A stretch of DNA of 64,000 nt, from positions 168,029-232,028 of the IMG/VR virus record IMGVR_UViG_3300030329_004647. One strand, given 5' to 3'. Positions 4,848 through 41,503 of the stretch are shown here, one piece after another (the stretch's first letter is position 1; each line of letters starts with the position of its first letter). Under the pieces are notes generated by a model. It was not told the origin of the DNA and made no database searches. It saw only the letters and a program-made list of their open reading frames with translations. The position numbers and the translations under genes are program-made.

Positions 4848-5978
4848 TTAAATTACGTAAATACTTCCTGGATTCATTGGCCTATATCCTAATGATTTAT
4901 TTAGGTTTTCTGCCTCTAGAGCTTTTCTCTCTAACATTTTATCATTCCTTAATCTTTCTAATCTAGCTACTAACTCCTCTATTAATTTAGCATATTCATC
5001 TTTAGCTTCATTTAATAAACTATCATACTCTAAAGTAAGTTCTGAATCTGGTGTTTTTAAATTACCACCAAACTTTCCTCGGACACGACCTAATATTTCT
5101 TTAGATTTAGCGAAAAAATATCTTCTAACCCATGATTGAGCTGGAGGATTAAGTTCACCAAAATTAATTTCATCCAATCTTACATCACTAGGTAATAATA
5201 CAATATCTTTATTTTTTGCTAAACAATCGTCTCTATCACCACCAGTATCATAATACCAATAATAAACTCTGTGTTGGTTAACATCTATATTACCAAAATC
5301 AAATCTTCCACCAGGTACATTATATAGGTGTAGGTACTTAACTCCATTCACACCACCTGCTCCAGCTGTTATTCTATATGTTAATTCACCACCAATAATT
5401 CTATTTTTAAGATTTCTATCCTGCATTCTTAATAGGATATCAAAAGCAGGCATCATATAATAAGAACCTTGAATCCCCATTTGAGCAAATCCTCCAGGAC
5501 CACCAACACCCATTCCACCAAATCCACCAAAAGCACCTAAAAACGGGTCTAAAAAAGCTTCGTTTAATTCTGCACGACTATACCACAACACTTCATTAAT
5601 CTCTCGACCAGCTGGTATTTCATACATTTGTTGGTTATTAACTAAGGTTACATAGTCTTGTTTTAATTGGTACGGTCCTCCAGCTTGTAAACCTACAATC
5701 TTTGAGTATGCGTAAGTAAATGACGTTTCAAAGTTAAGGTCTCTAGTCATAAAAGCGTTGGTGAGAGAAATAACATCCTGGTCTTGACCATATAAAGAAG
5801 ACCATTGATTTTCTATCAACCAATCCTGTATATACTGACCATAATCCATTATAGCTACTTCTAATGCCGTATCTAACATTTCATCTTCTAATTCAACAGC
5901 TCTTATAGGAGCACCTAACATGTGCTTACACTGTTTAAATAATTTTTCTCTTTTTAAGGGGTCTATTGTTGGTTCCAT
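4848..5978 (-). CDS. Neck/head-tail adaptor protein (T4 gp13-like)
   Basis: N-terminal KHMLGAPIRAVELEDEMLDTALEVA and C-terminal WVRRYFFAKSKEILGRVRGKF...EAKDEYAKLIEEL match the gp13 pattern. Confidence 0.8.
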   Translation of the reverse strand: MEPTIDPLKREKLFKQCKHMLGAPIRAVELEDEMLDTALEVAIMDYGQYIQDWLIENQWSSLYGQDQDVISLTNAFMTRDLNFETSFTYAYSKIVGLQAGGPYQLKQDYVTLVNNQQMYEIPAGREINEVLWYSRAELNEAFLDPFLGAFGGFGGMGVGGPGGFAQMGIQGSYYMMPAFDILLRMQDRNLKNRIIGGELTYRITAGAGGVNGVKYLHLYNVPGGRFDFGNIDVNQHRVYYWYYDTGGDRDDCLAKNKDIVLLPSDVRLDEINFGELNPPAQSWVRRYFFAKSKEILGRVRGKFGGNLKTPDSELTLEYDSLLNEAKDEYAKLIEELVARLERLRNDKMLERKALEAENLNKSLGYRPMNPGSIYVI

Positions 5979-6018
5979 AAGCTAATTCTTTTACTATAAA
6001 TATTAGCAACTACGCATT

Positions 6019-6066: not shown

Positions 6067-6675
6067 TTAATCTTCGTCTGTAATCTTATATTCTAGCTCC
6101 TGTCCTACAAGAGGTTCTTCTTTTTCAATCTCTATATCAACTTCGGATTCTTCTTCAGTTGGTGGAGTCATCATTTCCTCATATTGTGTTAGTAAGTTTT
6201 GAACACCTCTACCAAACAAATCTTCATTACCTATATTATCTCTAAGGTCAAAAATATCTTGTACTAGTCTATCTTGAGGAGAAATAGCCACCTCTGTTTC
6301 TTCCATTACTCTATGGACTATTCTTTTAAGTGTAGACTCATTTATTTTTACAACTTTTTTAGATTCATTCATTCCTAATCCTTTAAATGTTCCATATCCT
6401 TCAGAGTTTTCATTTTTACCCTCAACCTCCATTTCTTTCATTTCTTCCATTTCAGTTTTTTCAGTATCCTCCATTTCAGCTATCTCATCAGCTATTTTTC
6501 GTTGTGCTTTTGTTAACTCCTTAATGTCTGCGTTATACTTACCATGATTTTTTAAACCTTCTTTTGCAATCTTAAGAGCGTTGTATGCTGCTTTTAAGTC
6601 TGTTTTAGTATTCTTTGAATCACCCTCGTATAGGTTCATTAGAGTTTTACGTAGTTTAGATTTTATATTTTCCAT
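6067..6675 (-). CDS. Acidic hypothetical protein, probable head-internal/virion protein
   Basis: Likely start is ATG 6675 (MENIKSKLRK), which follows a TATTTAT motif, rather than 6723. Contains KKVVKINESTLKRIVHRVMEE. Confidence 0.6.
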   Translation of the reverse strand: MENIKSKLRKTLMNLYEGDSKNTKTDLKAAYNALKIAKEGLKNHGKYNADIKELTKAQRKIADEIAEMEDTEKTEMEEMKEMEVEGKNENSEGYGTFKGLGMNESKKVVKINESTLKRIVHRVMEETEVAISPQDRLVQDIFDLRDNIGNEDLFGRGVQNLLTQYEEMMTPPTEEESEVDIEIEKEEPLVGQELEYKITDED

Positions 6676-6924
6676 ACTGTTGTGTTTTAATAATAAATAT
6701 TTACTACACCAATAAAGATACATTAGGATTATAGTATAAATTTTTTCTTTATAAAAAAGCGGTATTTAATTATAATATTTTAATCACATTTAGAGCTAGT
6801 CTTTAAAAAGTAAAAAACAATAAAAAAATAGTTAAGTTTGTCGTAAAAATATTAACAACAGAAATAGTAACATAGCTAAACTTATGACAATTAGCTGTAA
6901 TTAAATAAAAATCACCCTAAAACC

Positions 6925-6952: not shown

Positions 6953-7158
6953 AAAACTTGGAAAAATTAGAGTAAATTAGTGAAAATAATGGAAAATAAT
7001 TGATATTAAAAAAAATACGTCTAACGTGTGTATAAACGTAAGTTTTTTAATAATTAAAATTAAGTTTGTATTATTGACTACTATGGTTGGGGTTAAAATA
7101 TGGGTTTTTAGTAATAATAACGGGTATTTATGACTACCAATAACAGTTATAAAAAATA

Positions 7159-7389
7159 GTGATTATGGATTCAGTATTTAAGTATGTAAATGGTTTTATT
7201 AGTGGAGTTGGAAGTCTTTTTATGGCTTTCATACCAGTAACGATTCTATGGTATGTATTGACTGGCGGTGCTGTGTTTAACATGGACGTAGTAGGAAACT
7301 TAACAAATCTTCTAACAAGTTTAGGTGACGGAGGTTTTGTTGGTTTAGTAGTATTAGTTATTCTAGCATCCTTTTTTACAAAAAAGTAA
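7159..7389 (+). CDS. Small membrane protein (2-3 hydrophobic helices)
   Basis: 76 aa with hydrophobic segments (GSLFMAFIPVTILWYVL; GFVGLVVLVILASFF) ending KK. Confidence 0.75.
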   Translation: MIMDSVFKYVNGFISGVGSLFMAFIPVTILWYVLTGGAVFNMDVVGNLTNLLTSLGDGGFVGLVVLVILASFFTKK

Positions 7390-7463
7390 AATAAAAAAAG
7401 GTGAAGATAATTCTCTTACACCTTAAAAAAAAATGAGAATATAAAAAGAGAAAAAATTTTAAT

Positions 7464-7871
7464 ATGAAAAATTTAATTTTAGCAGGGATTTTCAGTTTAG
7501 CCACTTTATGTGGGTATTCACAAACAAAGGGAGACTGGTATGTAGGAACAGGCGACATCGCGAACAGCGCTTGGACTGACTGGGCAGTATCACCAACGAT
7601 TGGATACGGAATTATGGACAACCTAATGATAGGAATGTCTGTATCACAAGCTGATTCTACTGTGGATATGGATTTGGATTTTCACGCAAGATACTTTACA
7701 AAAGGATATTTTGTGTATGTTGCAACAGATGGATTGAGTACTGACAACATGGTTTTAGGAGGTGGTAAAATGTTTGCCTTCAGAAACAATATGTACATCG
7801 ACCCAAAAATTGTATACAACATGGGTGAAAAGACCACAAACCTTACAATGGGATTTGGTTTCAAATTTTAA
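7464..7871 (+). CDS. Outer-membrane beta-barrel protein (8-stranded) with Sec signal peptide
   Basis: MKNLILAGIFSLATLCGYS/Q signal peptide, eight alternating amphipathic strands, and C-terminal MGFGFKF (BAM beta-signal ending in Phe). Confidence 0.85.
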   Translation: MKNLILAGIFSLATLCGYSQTKGDWYVGTGDIANSAWTDWAVSPTIGYGIMDNLMIGMSVSQADSTVDMDLDFHARYFTKGYFVYVATDGLSTDNMVLGGGKMFAFRNNMYIDPKIVYNMGEKTTNLTMGFGFKF

Positions 7872-7984
7872 CAAAATAGTAAAGGATAAATAATTTAAGA
7901 CGGTTGCAAATTAGTGAAAGTTTTTTCCCGCAACCAAAAGATGGAAACTAATTACGGATTTTGAATTATTTAAGAGTTGCGAAG

Positions 7985-8010
7985 AACCCTGACGACGGTC
8001 AGGGTTTTTT
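7985..8010. terminator. Intrinsic terminator between convergent OMP and SOD genes
   Basis: AACCCTGAC-GACG-GTCAGGGTT then TTTT; perfect 9-bp stem. Confidence 0.85.
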
Positions 8011-8662
8011 ATTGCTTAGACTTTAAAGTATCACTAACATTATTCCAGTTAACAACTTTCCAGAAATTTTTTATATATTTTTTTCTATCGGACATGTAAT
8101 TAAGGTAATAAGCGTGTTCCCACACATCTAAACCTAGTAGAGGTTCCCCTAATCCTTCCATTAAAGGATTATCTTGATTGGGTGTTGTAACTATTTTAAG
8201 TCGTCCATTTTTTAACACCAACCAACACCAACCAGAACCAAATACTTTACCTGACTCTTCGTCAAACTGTCTTTTAAAATTATCAAGACTACCAAAATCT
8301 TTATTTATTTTTTGTCTTAGTTCTTTAGACAAGTCTGTTTTGTTGGGGGTGATATAATCTTTAAAAAATAAACTATGATTATAATACCCACCAGCATTAT
8401 TCCTAGTAAAAGTATCATAATTTTTAATACCTTTAATAATTTTTTCTATGTCTTTTGGTGGGTTTTTTCTTTTAGATAGAGCTTCATTTAGTTTTGTTGT
8501 ATACCCCTTATAATGTTTATTATAATGTTCCCACATTGTTTCATAACCCACGAAATCTTTAACAGAATTATAATCATATGGTAGACTAACCCTCTTAAAA
8601 AATGATTTTTTAGCTTCCGCTATAATATTTTCGTTTAATATTTTCTTAATTAAATTTCTCAT
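8009..8662 (-). CDS. sodA: Superoxide dismutase, Mn-type signature
   Basis: Metal ligands in EHYNKH, NNAGGYYNH and DVWEHAYY, plus FGSGWCWL and NQDNP. GG..NH together with QD is the Mn-SOD pattern. Has a ~20-aa extra N-terminal leader. Confidence 0.93.
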   Translation of the reverse strand: MRNLIKKILNENIIAEAKKSFFKRVSLPYDYNSVKDFVGYETMWEHYNKHYKGYTTKLNEALSKRKNPPKDIEKIIKGIKNYDTFTRNNAGGYYNHSLFFKDYITPNKTDLSKELRQKINKDFGSLDNFKRQFDEESGKVFGSGWCWLVLKNGRLKIVTTPNQDNPLMEGLGEPLLGLDVWEHAYYLNYMSDRKKYIKNFWKVVNWNNVSDTLKSKQ

Positions 8663-9114
8663 TGTTTACTAACTTTTTGCCAATAAGGTGACCTTAAAAG
8701 TACTGGGTACAGCTTTTTAGCTATCTCTTTGAATACTTTATTAATATTATCCATGTCGTCAACGTCTTTTTTATTGTCATGAACAAATCTAAGAGCCGCT
8801 CTAGTAAAAATATCTCTTATCTCTTGTGCATTATCCCATAAATATTTAACAGGACCCTCTTGGTCCTCAAAAAAAGAATCTGTATTATAATCGCCAGTTT
8901 CCTTTCCTCGATTTAAAATATCAGAAGAAAAATGATGCTCCAAATTAGACTTACCGTCTGTTAAAAATGGTGAAAGGTCGGTCATTAACATATTATAAGC
9001 ACCCCATAGTCTAAGCTGTTCAATATATCTAGAGACCTCAAAACGGTCTTTTGTTGGTAGTAGTTCTAAAGCATCGTAATTATCTATTAGGTAGTCTATA
9101 TCTGATTTTGACAT
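8659..9114 (-). CDS. Hypothetical protein
   Basis: 151-aa ORF; its stop overlaps the SOD start (ATGA overlap), consistent with translational coupling. Confidence 0.7.
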   Translation of the reverse strand: MSKSDIDYLIDNYDALELLPTKDRFEVSRYIEQLRLWGAYNMLMTDLSPFLTDGKSNLEHHFSSDILNRGKETGDYNTDSFFEDQEGPVKYLWDNAQEIRDIFTRAALRFVHDNKKDVDDMDNINKVFKEIAKKLYPVLLRSPYWQKVSKQ

Positions 9115-9144
9115 ATAAATTAAGTTTAGTTTTTAAATAAATAT

Positions 9145-10878
9145 TTAGAGAGACTGCATTTCCTGTAGTATTTCCGCAAACATGTCTTCTTCTTCCATGT
9201 TATCTCCCATTACAGTGTCTATAATTCTTTTTTTCTGTTGTACTATATTATATATAATACGTTCTATTGTATTTTCAAAAATAGGATATATACATGACAC
9301 ATTTTTCTTTTGTCCTATTCTAAATGCTCTATCTTCCGCTTGAGACATTGTAGCTGGAACAAAAGACAGGTCATTAAATATTACAACCTCAGCCTCTGTA
9401 AGAGTAATACCAACCCCACCAGCAACTATATTTGAAACAAATACTTTTACATTTGAGTCATTTTGAAAATCGTCTACACTTTTTTGTCTATCTTCTTTTT
9501 TCATTTGACCATATAATGGAACAGCTACCTTTTTATATTTTGAAAGAATTTGCATTAGAGGTTCAGTAAAGTTTGTAAAAACAATCACCTTTTTATCTTG
9601 TTCTAAACACTGGTCAATAAGGTCATATGTGTTTTTGAGTTTTTCTAGAGCAATAAGTTGTCTAACCTTCATTAGTTTGGACAGCTGTATTGTTAAACTT
9701 TTATTTTTGTTATCGTTTGCCCAATCCAAATACTCACCAACCTCTCTTTGATATTCCGTAGAATTTAACTCCAAAAAAATTGGCGTTATAATTTTATCTG
9801 GTAAATCTAATATTTCTTCTTTTAGTCTTCTTAAAACTTTTTGTTTAGTTCGGTCCCGTAATTCTTCTAGGTTGGATGCTCCATGAGTTAACCAAATTTT
9901 TCTATTCCCTTTTCTAATCTGATACCCATCACAATATCTTTTAACATAATGAACCCAGTTTTTCGCTACTCTAGAGTCTACTAACTTAAGAATATTATAG
10001 TAATTCATTGGTCTAGAAGTCATAGGTGTACCAGTTAATAACCAAACCTTTTTAATTTTAGAACATAAATTATTCACCAACTTAGTACGTTGAGCTTTAG
10101 GATTAGAAATGTAATGAGCCTCATCTATTATAATTAAATCAAAATTTTCATCTAAAATAGTCGTAATACTCTTATCTATAGAGTGAAAGTTTTTTAATAT
10201 ATCATAATTTATTATTACGAATTTACCACTTTTCCACTTCTTACCCTCAACAATTCCAATTTCTTCTTTACTATAATTTTCTATTTCTCTTTTCCAGTTT
10301 AATTTAAGTGTAGCTGGACATATTACTAATATTTTAGTTGACTTACTCTCAATAGCGGCTATTGTCCCACTAGTAGTTTTACCAACACCCATATCATCAG
10401 CTAAAATAAATTTATCATTACCTAATAATTTTTCTATAGCAATTTTTTGGTGGTCATAAGGCATTCTATGTGAATAAGGAGAGTAGTCTACAGAAACCTT
10501 TCTTTCTGTGTTAACAATAATTTGTGCTTTAGGCACCCAGAAGTCGTTTAAAGGATGAGTATCTATTATCTTCCCCCAAACATGGTAAGCTTTATCACTT
10601 TCACTTAATATTTTTTCTACCCATATTTTTTCTGGTTTTTTTTGTAAAAAGTTTTGTGACATAAGTGTTTCACTTAAATAATCATCTATCTCAATCCACT
10701 TACGAGCTATTTTAGGTACATTTTCATAATTTTTAATAATATAGTCTGCTTGTTTACGAGTGGGCAAAAAGTTTTTAGATAACTTTAAATTGTTTTTTAA
10801 TTTCAATATATAGTTATTTGCCCCCTCATATTTACTTAAGAGACTTAAAGATTCTATTTCAGGAAGTAAGTTATCCAT
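9145..10878 (-). CDS. SNF2/SWI2-family helicase-like ATPase
   Basis: ADDMGVGKT (Walker A), DEAH, LTGTP, QAEDRAFRIGQ (motif VI). Likely start is ATG 10878 (MDNLLPE). Confidence 0.93.
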   Translation of the reverse strand: MDNLLPEIESLSLLSKYEGANNYILKLKNNLKLSKNFLPTRKQADYIIKNYENVPKIARKWIEIDDYLSETLMSQNFLQKKPEKIWVEKILSESDKAYHVWGKIIDTHPLNDFWVPKAQIIVNTERKVSVDYSPYSHRMPYDHQKIAIEKLLGNDKFILADDMGVGKTTSGTIAAIESKSTKILVICPATLKLNWKREIENYSKEEIGIVEGKKWKSGKFVIINYDILKNFHSIDKSITTILDENFDLIIIDEAHYISNPKAQRTKLVNNLCSKIKKVWLLTGTPMTSRPMNYYNILKLVDSRVAKNWVHYVKRYCDGYQIRKGNRKIWLTHGASNLEELRDRTKQKVLRRLKEEILDLPDKIITPIFLELNSTEYQREVGEYLDWANDNKNKSLTIQLSKLMKVRQLIALEKLKNTYDLIDQCLEQDKKVIVFTNFTEPLMQILSKYKKVAVPLYGQMKKEDRQKSVDDFQNDSNVKVFVSNIVAGGVGITLTEAEVVIFNDLSFVPATMSQAEDRAFRIGQKKNVSCIYPIFENTIERIIYNIVQQKKRIIDTVMGDNMEEEDMFAEILQEMQSL

Positions 10879-10932
10879 TATATACAAATATAATAAATTC
10901 TCTAATATAAACAATTAAGTATTTATCTATAT

Positions 10933-11451
10933 ATGGCAAAACAGAAAAAAATACCTATTACAAGGATATCTCGATTTTTTGGGTCGGAAGATTTTGACCT
11001 AGAACAACAAATGGGGATGGAATGGTTACATGGTGACATGCATTTCACATTAGTATTATTTAGGGTAGATAGAAGACAATCAGACGTAGATGATGTTTAT
11101 GGTGAATCAGGTCCAGAAGAAATTAGATATTTTGCTCCTGTAGAATTTAACGCTTACGTCAAAATAGATGAACCACAAAATAAAAGCTACGCCGATGGAC
11201 TTGTAAATCAGATGGAGCCAGGAAATCTTACCTTTGGTGTTTATACTAAACATTTAGATGAATTAGATATTGATATTTCTTATGGTGATTACATTGGTTA
11301 TCAAGAAACCGAAGATAGGATGAGATATTATAGTGTAACTAATGATGGAAGAGTAACATCCGATTTAAAACACACCATTGGTGGATACAAACCTTTTTAT
11401 AGGACAATAAAATGTGCTTACGTAACACCAAATCAATTTAAAGGAATATAA
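10933..11451 (+). CDS. Neck/head-closure protein (T4 gp14-like)
   Basis: DDVYGES...APVEFNAYV...FGVYTKHLDELDIDISYGDYI pattern; sits next to the gp15-like gene. Confidence 0.65.
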   Translation: MAKQKKIPITRISRFFGSEDFDLEQQMGMEWLHGDMHFTLVLFRVDRRQSDVDDVYGESGPEEIRYFAPVEFNAYVKIDEPQNKSYADGLVNQMEPGNLTFGVYTKHLDELDIDISYGDYIGYQETEDRMRYYSVTNDGRVTSDLKHTIGGYKPFYRTIKCAYVTPNQFKGI

Positions 11452-12539
11452 TGGCATTACCTAAAAAAGTTAAAAAGAATTTAGATATTACTTCTAGAAA
11501 GGTACAAGAAGAGTATCCGTTTGGTTATAACGGAATACAAGTTCCTGACAGAAGAAAAGAATTAGCAGGACTCATAACAGAAGACGGTACATTTTTACCT
11601 AAATCGGTATTACATGAAGACCTAGACGGGGGTATGTTAAGTTTTGTACAAGAACAACTAAAAGTAGCACTTAACGGAAAACAACTTCCTGTCATAGATA
11701 GAATTTTAACCATTCAACGATGGGGAGAATTTGCACAAACTTGGAGTTTTGCTAATGAAGATAAAAATGTAGAACTACCTTTTATTGTTGTAGTAAGAAA
11801 ACCAGATGTACAATACGGTAGTAATCCAGCTTTAAGATATACAATCCCAAATAGAAAACAGTTTCATTTTGCCAAAGTACCAACTTGGGATGGAACTAGA
11901 AAAGGTATGGACGTTTATACAATTCCACAACCCGTACCTATAGACATTACTTATGATGTTAAAATCGTATGTAATAGAATGAGAGAACTTAACATTTTTA
12001 ACAGAAAAGTAATGCAAACTTTTACTTCTAGACAAGCCTATACTTTTGTTAAAGGACACTATGTTCCAATAATACTTAATTCTGTAGGTGATGAAAGTGT
12101 TATAGATACTGACGATAGAAGGTACTATCAACAAAATTATAGTTTTATCTTATTAGGATTTTTAATTGACGAGGAGGAGTTTGAAGTAAAACCAGCAATT
12201 ACCAGAAACTTAATGTTATTTGATTTTGATGTTAAAAATAAAAGAAAAAATATACAGGTTATGGATGGGAAGGTTAACCCATACAAATATAGAAGAAAAT
12301 TAAATTATGAAATAGGGTCAACAACCCCAGAAGTAGGAACTATAACTTATCAGTATAGAGCTAATATAAAAACTGTAAGAACAAGAAACGTATCGTCAGT
12401 AACATTTAAAATTAATGGTGTGACGGACAACTCACCAGAAATAGAAATAAAGAAGTTGGATAAATTAGAAGTGATTATTGATATAGACGATAACTCTAAA
12501 ACATCTATGGTTGTATTAGAAGAAACTCTTTTACCTTAA
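11451..12539 (+). CDS. Tail terminator/sheath-stabilising protein (T4 gp15-like)
   Basis: PQPVPIDITYDVKIVCNRMRELNIFNRKVMQTF and downstream FILLGFL resemble gp15; position between neck and sheath genes. Confidence 0.65.
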   Translation: MALPKKVKKNLDITSRKVQEEYPFGYNGIQVPDRRKELAGLITEDGTFLPKSVLHEDLDGGMLSFVQEQLKVALNGKQLPVIDRILTIQRWGEFAQTWSFANEDKNVELPFIVVVRKPDVQYGSNPALRYTIPNRKQFHFAKVPTWDGTRKGMDVYTIPQPVPIDITYDVKIVCNRMRELNIFNRKVMQTFTSRQAYTFVKGHYVPIILNSVGDESVIDTDDRRYYQQNYSFILLGFLIDEEEFEVKPAITRNLMLFDFDVKNKRKNIQVMDGKVNPYKYRRKLNYEIGSTTPEVGTITYQYRANIKTVRTRNVSSVTFKINGVTDNSPEIEIKKLDKLEVIIDIDDNSKTSMVVLEETLLP

Positions 12540-12827: not shown

Positions 12828-15800
12828 ATGGCTAACGGTAATAATAGAGTATTCGTATCTCCAGGGGTATACACCTCGGAAAAAGATTTAAGTTTTGTAG
12901 CACAGAGTGTTGGTGTTACAACATTAGGTTTGGTCGGAGAGACCAAAAAAGGGCCAGCTTTTGAACCAATCTTTGTAAGTAATTATAGTGACTTTACAAC
13001 TAGATTTGGTAGTACATCAGCTGACAAATTTGTTGATACACAAATTCCTAAACACGAATTAGCATTTATAGCAAAATCTTACTTATCACAATCAAATCAA
13101 TTGTTTGTGACAAGAGTATTAGGATTAAATGGTTATGATGCAGGACCATCTTGGTCAATAACAACAATCGGTGAAGTAGACCCACTATACGTTTCTGCTG
13201 CAACATCAGCTCAAACAACGAGTAACTGGAGTGACATTATTTACATTCCAATGACCTCAACTACCGCTACGCCAGACGGAATATATTTAACATATAACTC
13301 TGCGACAGGAAAGTTTAGTGACCCTATCACTGATATGACAACATTTGGGGGTGCCAATTTCCCAATTCAAAATTACCAACTAACAGGCCAAACATTTATT
13401 AATGGGTATGGAACTACTTTAGGTACTTTTATTGATGAAATAACCTCTTTTGTTAACACAGTAAATGGTGGGGACAATATGTCTTGGGATGGTTCAGGAC
13501 TAAGTCAATACTGGTATTATGGTGTATTAGGTACAGGAACAACTGTTGGTGGTGAAGGAGCAAATAGTTTTTGTGAACATTACGCTAACACGTGGATGAC
13601 AGGTAATACATCAGGATTATCCATTCAAGCAATAGACCATGAAAATAGATTAGCTGTTGACGCTTCAAACTTCTATGATGACCAAAATGATGGTTGGTAT
13701 GACACTTTATTCGAGTATGAATATGGTGAAGGTGCTAACTGTTACTGTACTTCTTATTCAGGTTCTTCATTTGATATGTTTGGTTATTCAGCTTTAACAG
13801 CTCAAACATATATAGATGAAGTTGACTTAAGTACTAGTGGAGCAAGTACATTCTTTGCTGGTGGACAATTTAATAATGACCCAACATCAGGAGGAACAAG
13901 TACAGAATGGTCAGGAGCTACAGGAGTAAATGGAACAGGTGGACAAGCTGTAATATCGTTTACGGCTACTAGTAGTGGTGGTCCAGAAACTTGGGCATAC
14001 AGAATTGGTTCAACATCAGCTAACGCAACAGGTGTAGTAGCTAATGTATGGAGTTCCCTATACCAAACACCAGTGGGAACATATGATAGTATAGGACCTG
14101 TAACGACACATCCTTATGTACCATCTGATTTTGACGAGGTATTATCAGGAGGAACAGCATCCACAACAACAGTATTAAAGAGTAATCCATATCCAGTACC
14201 ATTAACGCCATTCGATTTCGCGAAGAGTGGTACAACTTGTGATACTAGTATAGGAGCTTACTCAGCTGTTTCAGTAATTTATAGTGGATTTGCTAATATT
14301 GGTAGTTTAGTAGGTGGTAACTTAGGTGGAGCAGGAACTGGATTCGACCAAGGTAATCTATCTTCAGGTATTTCACATACCTTTGTTGGTTTCTCTGGAG
14401 CTGACGGACCAAACTCATATTCTGGGACACTTGCTGTTAATATGGTATTCTATAGTGCTGATTGTCAATCACAAAATCTGTTAACATTACAATTAAGTGG
14501 TTGTGCAGCTGAATATCAAAATGTAAGTGCAGACACTGAATATCACAACTTAGTAGTGGCAACAATGAGAGCTAGAGGACAAAGTTCACTTTCTACAGGA
14601 GGACCAGTCTATACAATTAGTGGTTCATCATCATCCTCAACAGGAGCTTACGGTGATGTAACATTTAATTGTTTAGGAGCTTACCAACCAATAGTTGATG
14701 ACCCATTCTTTAATTTTGGTATAAGTGCTAGAACGGATGGTGGAGCAACATATAACTTTGATGTGAGCATGAATACATCATCTAAAAATTACCTACCAAA
14801 AGTATTAGGTAGAAATGTATTTGATAAAAAAATGGAGGAAGTTCCTATTTTTGTTGAGGAAGTTTACCCTAATATCCTAAAATATGGATTTAATAGAAAT
14901 AGAATTAGAGGCCTAAACTGTTGTTTATTAAAATTACCAGCAGCAAGATGGAACAATACAGGTATGGATTCTATAGGTTGGTACATGCAACAATGGCAAA
15001 CACCAGAAACACCTTACGTAGTTTCAGAATTACGAGGTGAGGATGTATATAGACTATTTAAATTTGTTTCTATTTCAGACGGTACAGAAGCAAATAGAGA
15101 ATATAAAGTATCAATTATAAACATTTCATTTGAAAGATTAGAGTTTGATGTATTAGTTAGAGATTTCTATGATAGTGACGCTAGTCCTGTTGTTTATGAA
15201 AAATTCACAAGATGTAGTTTAGACCCATCATTACCTTCTTTTATAGGAAGAAAAATAGGTACTTCAGATGGTCAATACGAATTAAGGTCTAAATACACAA
15301 TGTTATATTTAACTGAAGAGGTTTTAGATGGAACACTTAAAGACGCTGTTCCAGCAGGTTTTGATTACTACGATTTTAGAAATTATGAAAACGGTGCTGG
15401 TAAAACGTGTAGAGCTATTCCACCGATGTTAAAATATAAAACAAAATACTTTACGGCTGGAGAAGTAGTTTATGACCCACCTTATGATAACGCTGACGGA
15501 AGTGCTAACTCTTATATATCACCAGGTGACAATGTGAGAAAAACATATTTAGGTATTTCTGACACAGTAGGTGCAGCTATAGATTTTGATTTCTTCGAGT
15601 ATAAAGGTAAGAAAACACCAGTATCGGTTTGTACAGATGTTAATGGTGTAAGTTGGGGAACAATCAGAAAAGGTTTCCATATGGATTCAGGAGCTACAAT
15701 AATTGTTGCGGGTTCTGGAACGTATATAACACAATCGGGTACAACTCTTAGTGGTGACTCTATCTTTGAGGTGGGAGCAGCAGACTTTAGAGGTGAACCA

Positions 15801-16913
15801 GCATCAAGTAATCACCCATACAAAAAACTAAATTCTCGTAAATTTACTTTAGCACCTTATGGTGGTTTTGATGGATGGGATGAATACCGTAAGTTTAGAA
15901 GTAATGGTGATTCCTATAGACTTGGACTACAAGGATTCTTAAATGGAGCGTGTAATGACGCGGTTTACCCGTCAGCTGTAGGAGACGGTTCATTTAAAGC
16001 TCTAAGTAGTACTGAAGCAAATACGGATTATTTTGCATACCTTAGAGGTGTACAAACATTCCAAAACCCAGAAGCGGTTAATATTAATGTATTTGCTACA
16101 CCAGGTATTGACTACGTTAACAACCAATCTCTAGTTAAAGAATCTATAGATATGGTAGAAAGTCAAAGAGCTGACTCGTTATATATTACGACAACACCTG
16201 ACTTTAACATGTACGTACCAACATCTTCAGATGTGACAAATCAAATATCACCAACAGAAGCTGGAGATAATTTAGAGGACTCACTAATAGATTCTAACTA
16301 TACGGCAACGTATTATCCATGGATTTTGGTTAGAGATGACAATAGTAATAAACAAATCTATATACCACCAACATCAGAGGTTACTAGAAACTTAGCATTA
16401 ACTGATAATGTAGCATTCCCTTGGTTCGCTTCAGCAGGTTATACACGTGGTTTAGTAAACGCACAAAGAGCTAGAAGAAAACTGACTCAGGACGAAAGAG
16501 ATACGTTATATGTTGATAGAATTAACCCAATAGCGACATTCTCAGATGTAGGACCAATTATTTTTGGACAGAAAACTCTACAAATTAAAGAGTCTGCTCT
16601 TGACAGAATTAATGTTAGAAGATTATTATTACAAACAAGAAAACTAATTTCCGCGGTAGCTGTTAGACTACTATTCGAACAAAATGATGATGTAGTAAGA
16701 CAACAATTCTTAGACCTAGTTAACCCTATATTAGATTCTATTAGAAGAGATAGAGGTTTAACAGACTTTAGAGTTGTACTTTCTAACGACCCAGAAGAAA
16801 TTGATAGAAATGAATTAAATGGTAAGATTTACTTAAAACCTACAAGAGCGTTAGAGTTTATCTTCATAGAATTCTTGATAACACCAACTGGAGCAGAATT
16901 TGAATCAGTTTAA
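12828..16913 (+). CDS. Contractile tail sheath protein (T4 gp18-like), unusually large
   Basis: N-terminal FVSPGVYTSEKDLS...GPAFEP and C-terminal NINVFATPG...YYPW...WFASAG...DRINVRRLL...IYLKPTRALEFIFIEF. Confidence 0.96.
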   Translation: MANGNNRVFVSPGVYTSEKDLSFVAQSVGVTTLGLVGETKKGPAFEPIFVSNYSDFTTRFGSTSADKFVDTQIPKHELAFIAKSYLSQSNQLFVTRVLGLNGYDAGPSWSITTIGEVDPLYVSAATSAQTTSNWSDIIYIPMTSTTATPDGIYLTYNSATGKFSDPITDMTTFGGANFPIQNYQLTGQTFINGYGTTLGTFIDEITSFVNTVNGGDNMSWDGSGLSQYWYYGVLGTGTTVGGEGANSFCEHYANTWMTGNTSGLSIQAIDHENRLAVDASNFYDDQNDGWYDTLFEYEYGEGANCYCTSYSGSSFDMFGYSALTAQTYIDEVDLSTSGASTFFAGGQFNNDPTSGGTSTEWSGATGVNGTGGQAVISFTATSSGGPETWAYRIGSTSANATGVVANVWSSLYQTPVGTYDSIGPVTTHPYVPSDFDEVLSGGTASTTTVLKSNPYPVPLTPFDFAKSGTTCDTSIGAYSAVSVIYSGFANIGSLVGGNLGGAGTGFDQGNLSSGISHTFVGFSGADGPNSYSGTLAVNMVFYSADCQSQNLLTLQLSGCAAEYQNVSADTEYHNLVVATMRARGQSSLSTGGPVYTISGSSSSSTGAYGDVTFNCLGAYQPIVDDPFFNFGISARTDGGATYNFDVSMNTSSKNYLPKVLGRNVFDKKMEEVPIFVEEVYPNILKYGFNRNRIRGLNCCLLKLPAARWNNTGMDSIGWYMQQWQTPETPYVVSELRGEDVYRLFKFVSISDGTEANREYKVSIINISFERLEFDVLVRDFYDSDASPVVYEKFTRCSLDPSLPSFIGRKIGTSDGQYELRSKYTMLYLTEEVLDGTLKDAVPAGFDYYDFRNYENGAGKTCRAIPPMLKYKTKYFTAGEVVYDPPYDNADGSANSYISPGDNVRKTYLGISDTVGAAIDFDFFEYKGKKTPVSVCTDVNGVSWGTIRKGFHMDSGATIIVAGSGTYITQSGTTLSGDSIFEVGAADFRGEPASSNHPYKKLNSRKFTLAPYGGFDGWDEYRKFRSNGDSYRLGLQGFLNGACNDAVYPSAVGDGSFKALSSTEANTDYFAYLRGVQTFQNPEAVNINVFATPGIDYVNNQSLVKESIDMVESQRADSLYITTTPDFNMYVPTSSDVTNQISPTEAGDNLEDSLIDSNYTATYYPWILVRDDNSNKQIYIPPTSEVTRNLALTDNVAFPWFASAGYTRGLVNAQRARRKLTQDERDTLYVDRINPIATFSDVGPIIFGQKTLQIKESALDRINVRRLLLQTRKLISAVAVRLLFEQNDDVVRQQFLDLVNPILDSIRRDRGLTDFRVVLSNDPEEIDRNELNGKIYLKPTRALEFIFIEFLITPTGAEFESV

Positions 16914-16934: not shown

Positions 16935-17219
16935 ATGGAATTGAATAAAGAAATTTTAATAGAAAGTTTAGGTGTGAAGTCGACTGGAGCTAAACATTTT
17001 ACTAATAATAAAAAACAATCAGTTATTATAAGTGAAAAACAACTCGAAAGATTAGTAGAAAAATATGTCAATGAAGATGAAAATGTTGTTAATATCGACA
17101 TACCATCGGGAAGTAACGTAGAAGTTACCCCAAAAGATGAAGATATGGCAGAAGATGTTGTAGCAGGAATCGACAATGACATGATTGATGAGGAAGAATC
17201 TTGTCCAGACGATGTTTAA
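16935..17219 (+). CDS. Small acidic hypothetical protein
   Basis: 94 aa; contains KKQSVIISEKQLERLVEKYVNE. Confidence 0.7.
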   Translation: MELNKEILIESLGVKSTGAKHFTNNKKQSVIISEKQLERLVEKYVNEDENVVNIDIPSGSNVEVTPKDEDMAEDVVAGIDNDMIDEEESCPDDV

Positions 17220-17337: not shown

Positions 17338-18198
17338 ATGAGTAAAATTATCATAACAGCAAAACAACTAGAACATCTAAGTAATGTAGTTAAAGAACAA
17401 GCTAGAGCAAATAATGGTGCTGTAAGAGCTTATTCTTTTGATTGGGACGACAATATCCTCCATATGCCTACTAAAATTGCAATTGATTACAATAACGGCA
17501 CAGAATGGGTACCAACCCTCATAACCACTGAAATGTTTTCTAAGGTAAGAGAAAATGAAAATTTTAGGGTAAATGAAGATTCCTTTGTTAATTTTAGAAA
17601 TGATAATGTTTTTTTTGACGACCTTAATGAAGCTTTACAAAAAAGAAGTTTCGCTCCTTCTTTTGAAAAATTTAAAGAATCTTTAATATACGCTAATCCT
17701 TTTTCTATTATTACAGCAAGAGGACATACACCAGAAGTTTTTCCTAAAGGTATAAAAGTAATAATTGGAAATACTTTTAGTGAGGGAGAACTAGAAGATA
17801 TGTTATTTAACATTAAGAAGAAATATCCAGAAACTGTGGACTATTCACCGTGGGACGCGATTGATTTTTATTTAAATGAAAATGAATACCACCCTGTAAC
17901 ATCCGAAGAATTCGGTAAAAAATTCGGAAATAGGTTCATCAATACGGATAACCCTGAAGAAGCTAAAAAAACAGCACTTAGAAATTATATAGAAAAAGTT
18001 GTAAACGGTGTTAGTAAAATAGAAGATGGTAATTATTCACAATTATCTATAGGTTTTAGTGACGATGACTACGGTAATATAAGTGCTGTAATAAATTTAA
18101 TAAAAGATGAACTAAACCAAAAGTATCCACAAGTAAATTTTGTTGTATATGACACATCTAGTGGTGACATAAACAAAATTGTAGTTAAAAGAGAATAG
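17338..18198 (+). CDS. HAD-superfamily phosphatase-like protein
   Basis: Motif I FDWDDNI (DxD), motif II IITARG, conserved Lys (EAKK), motif IV GFSDDD. Confidence 0.75.
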   Translation: MSKIIITAKQLEHLSNVVKEQARANNGAVRAYSFDWDDNILHMPTKIAIDYNNGTEWVPTLITTEMFSKVRENENFRVNEDSFVNFRNDNVFFDDLNEALQKRSFAPSFEKFKESLIYANPFSIITARGHTPEVFPKGIKVIIGNTFSEGELEDMLFNIKKKYPETVDYSPWDAIDFYLNENEYHPVTSEEFGKKFGNRFINTDNPEEAKKTALRNYIEKVVNGVSKIEDGNYSQLSIGFSDDDYGNISAVINLIKDELNQKYPQVNFVVYDTSSGDINKIVVKRE

Positions 18199-18778: not shown

Positions 18779-18805
18779 AAAAAACCCCAGTTATGGGGTT
18801 TTTTT
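18779..18805. terminator. Bidirectional terminator between tube gene and Mom-like gene
   Basis: AAAAAACCCCA-GTTA-TGGGGTTTTTT; the loop contains the minus-strand stop of the Mom-like gene. Confidence 0.85.
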
Positions 18806-19417
18806 ATTTAAAGGGGCAACATTTTTATTTTTGGGATAAGGTTGTTTAATCCACTTAGTTTTAAGGGTTTTATCAAAAACTAACATGTATCTATGTTTTC
18901 TAGTCCTATCCCTCCATTCACCTCGTTTATTTTTTACGGGTCCTCGAGAATGTTTTATAAACGTACCATCACCCAACTCAAACCAAAAATCTTTCTTTTT
19001 ATCTGTTAATCCATAATACGAAAAATTGGTTGCCTGATAAATGTAACCATTATGTAGTTTGGAATCAGCATAAGATATTACAGCTTTAAGAACTGTTTCT
19101 TTTTTAAGAAGTTTAATAGATTTTGAGACGAACCAAGATAATAAATTTTTAAAATTGTGTTCGGGATGTACACACAGTCTTCCCAGTTCATATATTCCCT
19201 CCTGAGAACTCCTATCTAAACCAAAACAACCTTTAACTAATTCAGGCACAGAGGGAGCATGAAAGATACATACACTTATTAACTCATCTTGTTTAAAAAT
19301 TCCGTAATTAAAACCACATCTGAAACCTTTACTTTCTTTTGACAAGTAATGATATTCATTAAGTAGCTTAGCGCATTCGGATTTAGTAATAGCTCTAATG
19401 CTTAAATTTTGAAACAT
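18791..19417 (-). CDS. Mom-like (GNAT-fold) DNA modification protein
   Basis: LLNEYHYL...YELGRLCVHP...SWFVSKSIKLLK...VISYADS...GYIYQATNFSYYG...KHRY resembles the phage Mu Mom family. Confidence 0.75.
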   Translation of the reverse strand: MFQNLSIRAITKSECAKLLNEYHYLSKESKGFRCGFNYGIFKQDELISVCIFHAPSVPELVKGCFGLDRSSQEGIYELGRLCVHPEHNFKNLLSWFVSKSIKLLKKETVLKAVISYADSKLHNGYIYQATNFSYYGLTDKKKDFWFELGDGTFIKHSRGPVKNKRGEWRDRTRKHRYMLVFDKTLKTKWIKQPYPKNKNVAPLNKKTP

Positions 19418-41302: not shown

Positions 41303-41503
41303 ATGAAACCATTAATTAAAAAGGTATTAAGAGAATATTGGGAAAAAGAACCAGATAAATGGGATTTGGTAGCTGAGGACCTTAAAGAATGCCTAGAAAA
41401 TATAATTCAAAAACATAAATCTAATTTTTATGACGACCAGTACGCGGTAATCAGTGCTATAGAGGATATAATGGAGAATATGTTCGCAAAAGTACCACGA
41501 TAG
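41303..41503 (+). CDS. Hypothetical protein with leader motif
   Basis: 66 aa starting MKPLIKKVLRE; preceded by TATTTAT (41291-41297). Confidence 0.65.
   Translation: MKPLIKKVLREYWEKEPDKWDLVAEDLKECLENIIQKHKSNFYDDQYAVISAIEDIMENMFAKVPR

Follow-up and report, generated by a model that had tools for sequence, protein, structure and literature searches.

We identify an intact manganese-type superoxide dismutase (SOD) gene in an uncultured marine jumbo T4-like phage, lying behind a late-promoter-like motif of the phage itself and encoding a short, probably detachable N-terminal leader of a kind carried by about 30 other phage proteins. This arrangement suggests, but does not prove, that the enzyme is loaded into the capsid. 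Late expression is well supported from sequence, whereas capsid loading is a reasoned inference that we consider about as likely as not. The original prediction described an intact Mn-SOD with a leader of about 20 residues, coupled through ATGA to a 151-aa ORF that is itself preceded by TATTTAT, and every element of this observation was confirmed in the sequence. Its interpretation, that the SOD is a late, virion-loaded protein protecting the genome or incoming DNA from superoxide, for example in sunlit water or on algal surfaces, is only partly supported: late wiring is supported more strongly than the original prediction could know, virion loading only indirectly and by evidence it did not use, and the proposed purpose remains speculation.

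The window analyzed here is the last 64 kb of a 232-kb IMG/VR virus record with 32% G+C, rated 72% complete by CheckV, which belongs to a jumbo myovirus of the T4 superfamily. It holds genes for a tail sheath, a tail tube and baseplate proteins, mixed with genes for PolB, a DnaB-like helicase, SSB-like and UvsX-like proteins and a ribonucleotide reductase. Elsewhere the genome encodes terminase, portal, a gp21-type prohead protease (Peptidase_S77, 88.7 bits; genome positions 116602–117303), an acidic, gp22-like scaffold protein and a gp23-type major capsid protein. No cultured phage is close; the best capsid-protein matches, 42–47% identical over part of the protein, are Microcystis phage Mel-JY01, uncultured huge phages, and Flavobacterium phage immuto. 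A megablast search of positions 7000–12000 against a phage collection found no match. The features of the locus are collected in the table.

Features of the SOD locus and related loci (positions in the 64-kb window).
Position	Strand	Feature	Basis
8009–8662	-	Mn-type Fe/Mn-family SOD, 217 aa; predicted metal ligands H46, H96, D179 and H183; outer-sphere residue Q163	Pfam Sod_Fe_N (PF00081), 3e-14, 53.5 bits against a cut-off of 27; Sod_Fe_C (PF02777), 1e-40, 138.1 bits against 20.9; no PHROG hit
8603–8662	-	Leader, residues 1–20, type A (M-R-N-L-I-K-K-I-L-N-E-N-I-I-A-E-A-K-K-S); candidate protease sites after E11 (L-N-E) and E16 (I-A-E↓A)	Outside the Pfam and PDB alignments; same leader on at least 8 other proteins
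8659–9114	-	151-aa orphan ORF, without leader or family assignment; ATGA overlap with the SOD start at 8659–8662	No Pfam or PHROG hit
9137–9144	-	Late-promoter-like motif ATATTTAT (TATTTAT at 9143–9137), directly after the SNF2 stop codon and ending 22 nt before the ATG of the 151-aa ORF	Matches the genome-wide consensus; equivalent motifs in front of the SOD in relatives
7985–8006	-	9-bp G+C-rich hairpin, 3 nt after the SOD stop codon; likely end of the transcription unit, though the U-tail is weak	-14.2 kcal/mol, z -4.8, 0 of 200 shuffles as good; found by folding, not listed by a strict terminator scan
9145–10878	-	SNF2-family helicase upstream of the SOD unit; likely start at the ATG at 10878 (577 aa)	Pfam SNF2-rel_dom and Helicase_C; phrog_62, 2e-103
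10885–10892	-	Host-type (Bacteroidota sigma-A '-7', TAnnTTTG) promoter-like element, 6 nt before the helicase ATG	Same TTATTAT[AC]TTTGTA word before about 10 other non-structural genes
4848–5978	-	T4 gp13-like neck (head-completion) gene; conserved downstream neighbor of the SOD in relatives; own late motif at 6002–5996(-)	phrog_211; PF26809 Phage_T4_gp13 in the syntenic relatives
41303–41503	+	66-aa ORF with the same type-A leader (M-K-P-L-I-K-K-V-L-R-E) directly behind a late motif	N-terminal pattern and motif scans
17338–18198	+	286-aa ORF with a type-B leader (I-I-I-T-A-K-Q-L-E-H-L) behind a late motif, between the sheath and tube genes	N-terminal pattern and motif scans

The SOD has the features expected of an intact enzyme. 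Its best solved relatives are the Sphingobacterium MnSODs 6gsc and 5a9g (E 3e-54), with which the four ligands (His, His, Asp, His), the Gln in T-P-N-Q-D-N-P and G91-G92 in N-N-A-G-G all align. An outer-sphere Gln from the C-terminal domain together with Gly-Gly in the N-terminal domain, rather than the A-A-Q of Fe enzymes, marks the Mn-specific subclass, although cambialistic enzymes can share these signatures. Among homologues, H46, D179 and H183 are invariant and H96 is at least 90% conserved. The Pfam and PDB alignments begin at residue 21–26, so about 20 residues lie ahead of the fold, which starts at F-F-K-R-V-S-L-P-Y; M1 is the only in-frame start codon before residue 43. An AlphaFold model built on 47 homologues gives a confident core (pLDDT above 90), with a solitary helix at residues 2–17 (pLDDT 49–59) that does not pack on the fold.

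The TATTTAT motif is not a chance occurrence. ATATTTAT and TATTTATA are the two most enriched 8-mers in the 70 nt upstream of ORFs across the genome, preceding 43 and 37 genes against about 2 expected, an enrichment of about 20-fold. Of 170 copies, 83 lie outside coding sequence, although only about 6% of the genome is non-coding. The consensus, R-TATTTAT-AATAAAAA, ends either 5 nt or 14–18 nt before the ATG and resembles the A/T-rich, -10-like octamer of T4-type late units, which lacks a -35 element. It precedes the terminase, portal, protease, scaffold, sheath, tube, baseplate-wedge and gp13-like neck genes, whereas PolB, the SSB-like and UvsX-like genes, DnaB and the reductase lack it. A second class of upstream word, TTATTAT[AC]TTTGTA, contains the Bacteroidota sigma-A '-7' element TAnnTTTG, usually lies 4–6 nt from the ATG and precedes other genes, including the SNF2 helicase. 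The genome also encodes a weak but specific homologue of the T4 late sigma factor gp55 (genome positions 132924–133625(-); E 3e-5 with T4 gp55, E 2e-6 with phrog_234). The motif thus behaves like this clade's counterpart of the T4 late promoter. Timing itself is inferred, as a search of sequencing runs found the locus in one DNA run and in no RNA run, and exclusively late expression is not shown: the SNF2 gene lies only 30 nt upstream of the 151-aa ORF, carries a host-type promoter-like element, and is separated from it by no hairpin, so that early read-through remains possible.

Comparison with relatives indicates that the late motif in front of the SOD, rather than its coupling to the 151-aa ORF, is the conserved feature. 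The nearest SOD homologues all lie on phage contigs with the same gene order: sheath, two small genes, then divergently SNF2 helicase, SOD, gp13-like neck gene, a small gene, and PolB. In three relatives whose SOD is only about 50% identical, the short SNF2-SOD gap contains [AG]TATTTATAT and the SOD-gp13 gap contains a second copy. In two relatives at 88% identity the motif lies directly before the SOD, which has ATATTTATA 24 nt before its own ATG. By contrast, only three homologues of the 151-aa ORF were found among 5.8 billion proteins; it is absent from the distant relatives, and in another, related phage it lies next to a different gene rather than beside a SOD. An Atlas search with this ORF gave only sub-threshold leads, and its model is poor (pLDDT 0.48). 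The ATGA coupling is therefore specific to this lineage. The fixed position of the SOD across relatives with only 50% identity shows that the gene is a long-standing core component of the clade and not a sporadic pickup.

Reading the N-termini of all 233 ORFs revealed three recurrent leader types: type A, M-[KR]-x-L-I-K-K-I-L-[RKN]-E, which the SOD carries; type B, K-I-K-L-T-E-x-E-L-x-x-L-I-E; and type C, S-E-x-E-K-N-R-I-R-x-L-H. Together they occur on about 26–30 otherwise unrelated proteins and are essentially confined to N-termini, with simple patterns hitting 11, 8 and 10 N-termini against about 0.2, 0 and 0 expected from the rest of the proteome; as these patterns were written after seeing the data, the contrast is descriptive. 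Leader genes lie in late-motif units in 23 of 26 cases, against 94 of 207 other genes (p = 3.5e-5), although they are scattered among tail genes as well as head genes. The sheath, tube, portal, terminase and replication proteins have no leader. Leader-bearing proteins with recognizable domains are a Peptidase_M23 + PG_binding + SLT protein (type A), a VanY peptidase, a DeoC-family aldolase and a CarboxypepD_reg protein (type C). The leader is modular, in that SOD orthologues with a 70–73% identical core carry a type-B leader instead of type A, while others have a 30–40-aa helical extension or an extra N-terminal domain. In the 361-aa SOD variants the leader-like segment is internal, behind the extra domain, which fits a simple N-terminal tag less well.

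A candidate cleavage site lies at a fixed position in the leader. Among the 120 best homologues, all 108 complete sequences with at least 15 aa ahead of L-P-Y have [LIVM]-x-E ending 6–14 aa before it, with the Glu falling 8 aa before L-P-Y in 99 occurrences and 10 aa before it in 8. In the 47-sequence alignment, E16 and K18 are the only positions of an otherwise variable leader conserved at 90% or more. The T4 prohead protease gp21 cuts after Glu in L/I-X-E, where a Glu-to-Asp change blocks cutting (PMC9026906), and the first 10 residues of IPIII are sufficient to take foreign proteins into the head (PMC9026906, PMC5694885). In the T4 record, IPII and IPIII begin M-K-T-Y-Q-E-F-I-A-E↓A, whereas the SOD has N-I-I-A-E↓A-K-K; cutting after E16 would leave a protein starting only about four residues before the first residue aligned in the Sphingobacterium enzyme. 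[LI]-x-E is a common tripeptide in this K/E/I/L-rich proteome, however, so that its fixed position rather than its presence is informative. The capsid protein's N-terminal propeptide is homologous to that of T4 gp23, but its own site is ambiguous by alignment (L-I-N-E↓A or S-F-E↓T), and the preference of the phage protease can only be assumed from T4. A complex prediction of SOD residues 1–45 with the prohead protease scored 0.00, which counts neither for nor against binding.

Had cellular homologues carried the same leader, the original prediction would have been refuted. Of the 80 best hits in 185,579 species genomes, 69 have a Met within 10 aa of L-P-Y and ten have longer N-termini, which are Tat, Sec or lipoprotein signals; none has the charged phage leader. 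In a quick maximum-likelihood tree, for which the search was short and no root was inferred, 28 phage SODs form one clade with SH-aLRT support of 100, and the next supported set (97) adds four Flavobacterium or Flavobacteriaceae lipoprotein-type SODs and one long-branched viral sequence. A single capture from Flavobacteriia is the simplest reading, not a proven one, and the TAnnTTTG promoters and lack of Shine-Dalgarno sequences point to the same host phylum. Inheritance of the leader from the cellular donor was considered and rejected, as the nearest Flavobacterium SODs carry lipoprotein signals unrelated to it.

We propose that an ancient lineage of marine jumbo T4-like phages, probably infecting Flavobacteriaceae, captured this Mn-type SOD from its host group and fitted it with one of its own leaders. 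In this view, the 151-aa/SOD unit is transcribed from a gp55-type late promoter ([AG]TATTTATA) together with the head, neck and tail genes, possibly also with early read-through from the helicase promoter. The roughly 16-aa amphipathic leader would take the SOD into the assembling prohead core, where the gp21-type protease would cut after Glu16, and possibly also after Glu11, leaving a SOD of nearly canonical length inside the capsid to enter the cell with the DNA. Our analysis establishes the intact SOD, the position of the leader outside the fold, its sharing among proteins and exchange between SOD orthologues, the conserved [LIVM]-x-E site, the protease gene, and the late motif with its conservation in relatives; late transcription, the bound metal and catalytic activity of the probably active enzyme, cleavage of the leader, packaging, and any benefit such as blunting a superoxide burst at the onset of infection are inferred.

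The most serious alternative, which we regard as less likely but possible, is an ordinary intracellular auxiliary enzyme that is made late, or both early and late, to keep the infected cell alive and productive under oxidative stress, is never packaged, and carries a helical extension serving oligomerization, solubility, or efficient translation of Shine-Dalgarno-less or leaderless mRNAs. SODs annotated in other jumbo phages have no known virion role, the 30–40-aa extensions of longer homologues are heptad-like and could form coiled coils, and the helicase promoter could give early expression. The leader-coding DNA is A/T-rich and similar between genes, so that an mRNA-level role is not excluded; a promoter-plus-leader DNA cassette spread by recombination was nevertheless rejected as the sole cause, because the same leader occurs both with and without a promoter directly upstream and with some synonymous differences. 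Against an intracellular role stand the sharing of three distinct peptide families by unrelated proteins and their exchange between SOD orthologues, the nearly invariant Glu, the failure of the leader to pack on the modeled fold, and the absence of leaders from replication and metabolic genes.

It is unlikely that the leaders direct proteins to the membrane, the periplasm or the lysis machinery, where the SOD would act outside the cytoplasm alongside cell-wall hydrolases carrying the same tags. Two leader-bearing proteins act on peptidoglycan, and the nearest cellular relatives of the phage SOD are exported lipoprotein-type enzymes of Flavobacterium, but the leaders are highly charged rather than hydrophobic and have no lipobox or twin-arginine motif, and a DeoC aldolase also carries one. 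Virion-borne cell-wall hydrolases are common in phages, so this cargo fits the capsid model equally well. Least likely is that TATTTAT is incidental here and that the 151-aa ORF and the SOD are the tail of the early SNF2 operon. The short gap without a hairpin and the 68% A+T content of the genome would allow this, yet the motif matches the extended consensus (A at -1, A-rich downstream) and is conserved at the same place in relatives whose intergenic sequence has otherwise diverged, with a second copy before the gp13-like gene.

A broader possibility, which we advance tentatively as less likely than not, is that a cosmopolitan clade of marine jumbo T4-like phages of Flavobacteriia uses the three leader families as a general cargo-loading system, placing about 30 proteins into the capsid for co-injection, including MnSOD, two cell-wall hydrolases and a DeoC aldolase captured from cells. 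The SOD would then be the first Fe/Mn superoxide dismutase known to be delivered by a phage particle, fixed next to the neck gene for the whole history of the clade. Phage auxiliary enzymes are usually assumed to act in the cytoplasm after expression, whereas a SOD arriving with the DNA would act before any phage gene is read, which would be a bacterial-virus parallel to the packaged Cu/Zn SODs of giant algal and amoebal viruses. The shared leaders also give a concrete, testable rule for predicting capsid cargo in uncultured jumbo phages from sequence alone, and could serve as a natural tag set for loading foreign proteins into large capsids.

[quoted passage not shown] Both involve a leader of 10–20 aa that is shared by otherwise unrelated proteins and ends in L/I-x-E↓A (a cut inferred here by analogy), a gp21-family protease with gp22-like scaffold and gp23-like capsid proteins, and cargo genes that are polymorphic between relatives. 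Here, however, there are three leader families rather than one, the putative cargo includes captured cellular enzymes (MnSOD, M23/SLT, VanY, DeoC), and there is no sequence similarity to the T4 leader beyond the cleavage site. In the literature searched, we found no close parallel for a virion-delivered Fe/Mn SOD in a phage. The functional precedent is the Cu/Zn SOD of chlorovirus PBCV-1 (A245R), a late gene whose product is packaged in the virion (PMC7019647), along with that of Megavirus chilensis; these are thought to lower superoxide early in infection (PMC7019647, PMC9405923), but belong to eukaryotic giant viruses and differ from the phage enzyme in fold and metal. The Bacteroidota MnSODs, namely the Sphingobacterium enzymes and Flavobacterium lipoprotein-type SODs, are 40–50% identical in the core, with identical ligands, the same Mn-type signatures and a fold starting at the same F-K-x-x-x-L-P-Y, and form the nearest branch to the phage clade. 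Fe/Mn-family SOD genes are also annotated in the large myovirus genomes of the PA5oct group and Vibrio phage 2.275.O, where they are only 25–29% identical and belong to a different lineage.

Across the whole genome (G000, the viral record of which the window is part), we identify three families of N-terminal leaders, types A, B, and C, on about 26-30 otherwise unrelated proteins, most of which belong to late units. These leaders are densest in the 51-88 kb region of G000, and three of the positions at which they occur in the window are listed in the table. Cell-derived enzymes are among the tagged proteins, as a DeoC/LacD-family aldolase and a VanY-type peptidase both carry type-C leaders and are tagged in the same way as the SOD. 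A further 98-aa protein has a type-C leader followed by the segment E-A-T-A-S-D-N-S-G-S-Y-E, which almost copies the segment E-A-T-A-A-D-N-S-G-S-F-E at the candidate maturation site of the capsid protein. A 218-aa ORF in the window has an internal type-B-like segment; this ORF probably starts at M17 (6675), where a late motif lies 17 nt upstream.

A second upstream word, TTATTAT[AC]TTTGTAGT, lies directly before ATG at one site in the window and at about 10 other sites in G000. It contains the Bacteroidota '-7' element TAnnTTTG only 4-6 nt from the start codon, which implies leaderless mRNAs for a class of probably early genes. PolB and the SSB-like gene have a looser variant of this word.

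The N-terminal architecture of the SOD varies among its orthologues, some of which are fused to extra N-terminal domains, as in homologues P0036 and P0046 (361-363 aa) and P0009 and P0010 (338-341 aa). One of these extra domains has an H-E-x-x-H motif. In the relatives L010-L014, the same extra domain is instead a separate 86-aa ORF coupled to the SOD. In the window, a two-gene plus-strand insert that is absent from relatives lies between the SOD and the neck gene, and encodes a small membrane protein and a 135-aa protein with a signal peptide and weak outer-membrane beta-barrel hits.

Coordinates of the leader-bearing positions, promoter-like word, and additional genes, in the window or in the whole genome (G000)
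Feature	Reference	Coordinates (strand)
Leader position	window	41303-41503(+)
Leader position	window	17338-18198(+)
Leader position	window	16935-17219(+)
DeoC/LacD-family aldolase and VanY-type peptidase, type-C leaders	G000	95971-96777(+) and 70008-70601(+)
98-aa protein with type-C leader	G000	78998-79294(+)
Capsid protein	G000	118838-120670(+)
218-aa ORF	window	6067-6723(-)
TTATTAT[AC]TTTGTAGT word	window	10885-10892(-)
Two-gene insert between the SOD and the neck gene	window	7159-7389(+) and 7464-7871(+)
Tail sheath protein gene	window	12828-16913(+)
Mom-like DNA modification protein gene	window	18791-19417(-)

The tail sheath protein is 1361 aa long, yet only its last 300 aa or so match sheath families, and it therefore has a very large N-terminal addition. 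A gene for a Mom-like DNA modification protein (phrog_1384, 5e-37) sits on the opposite strand between the tube and baseplate-hub genes.
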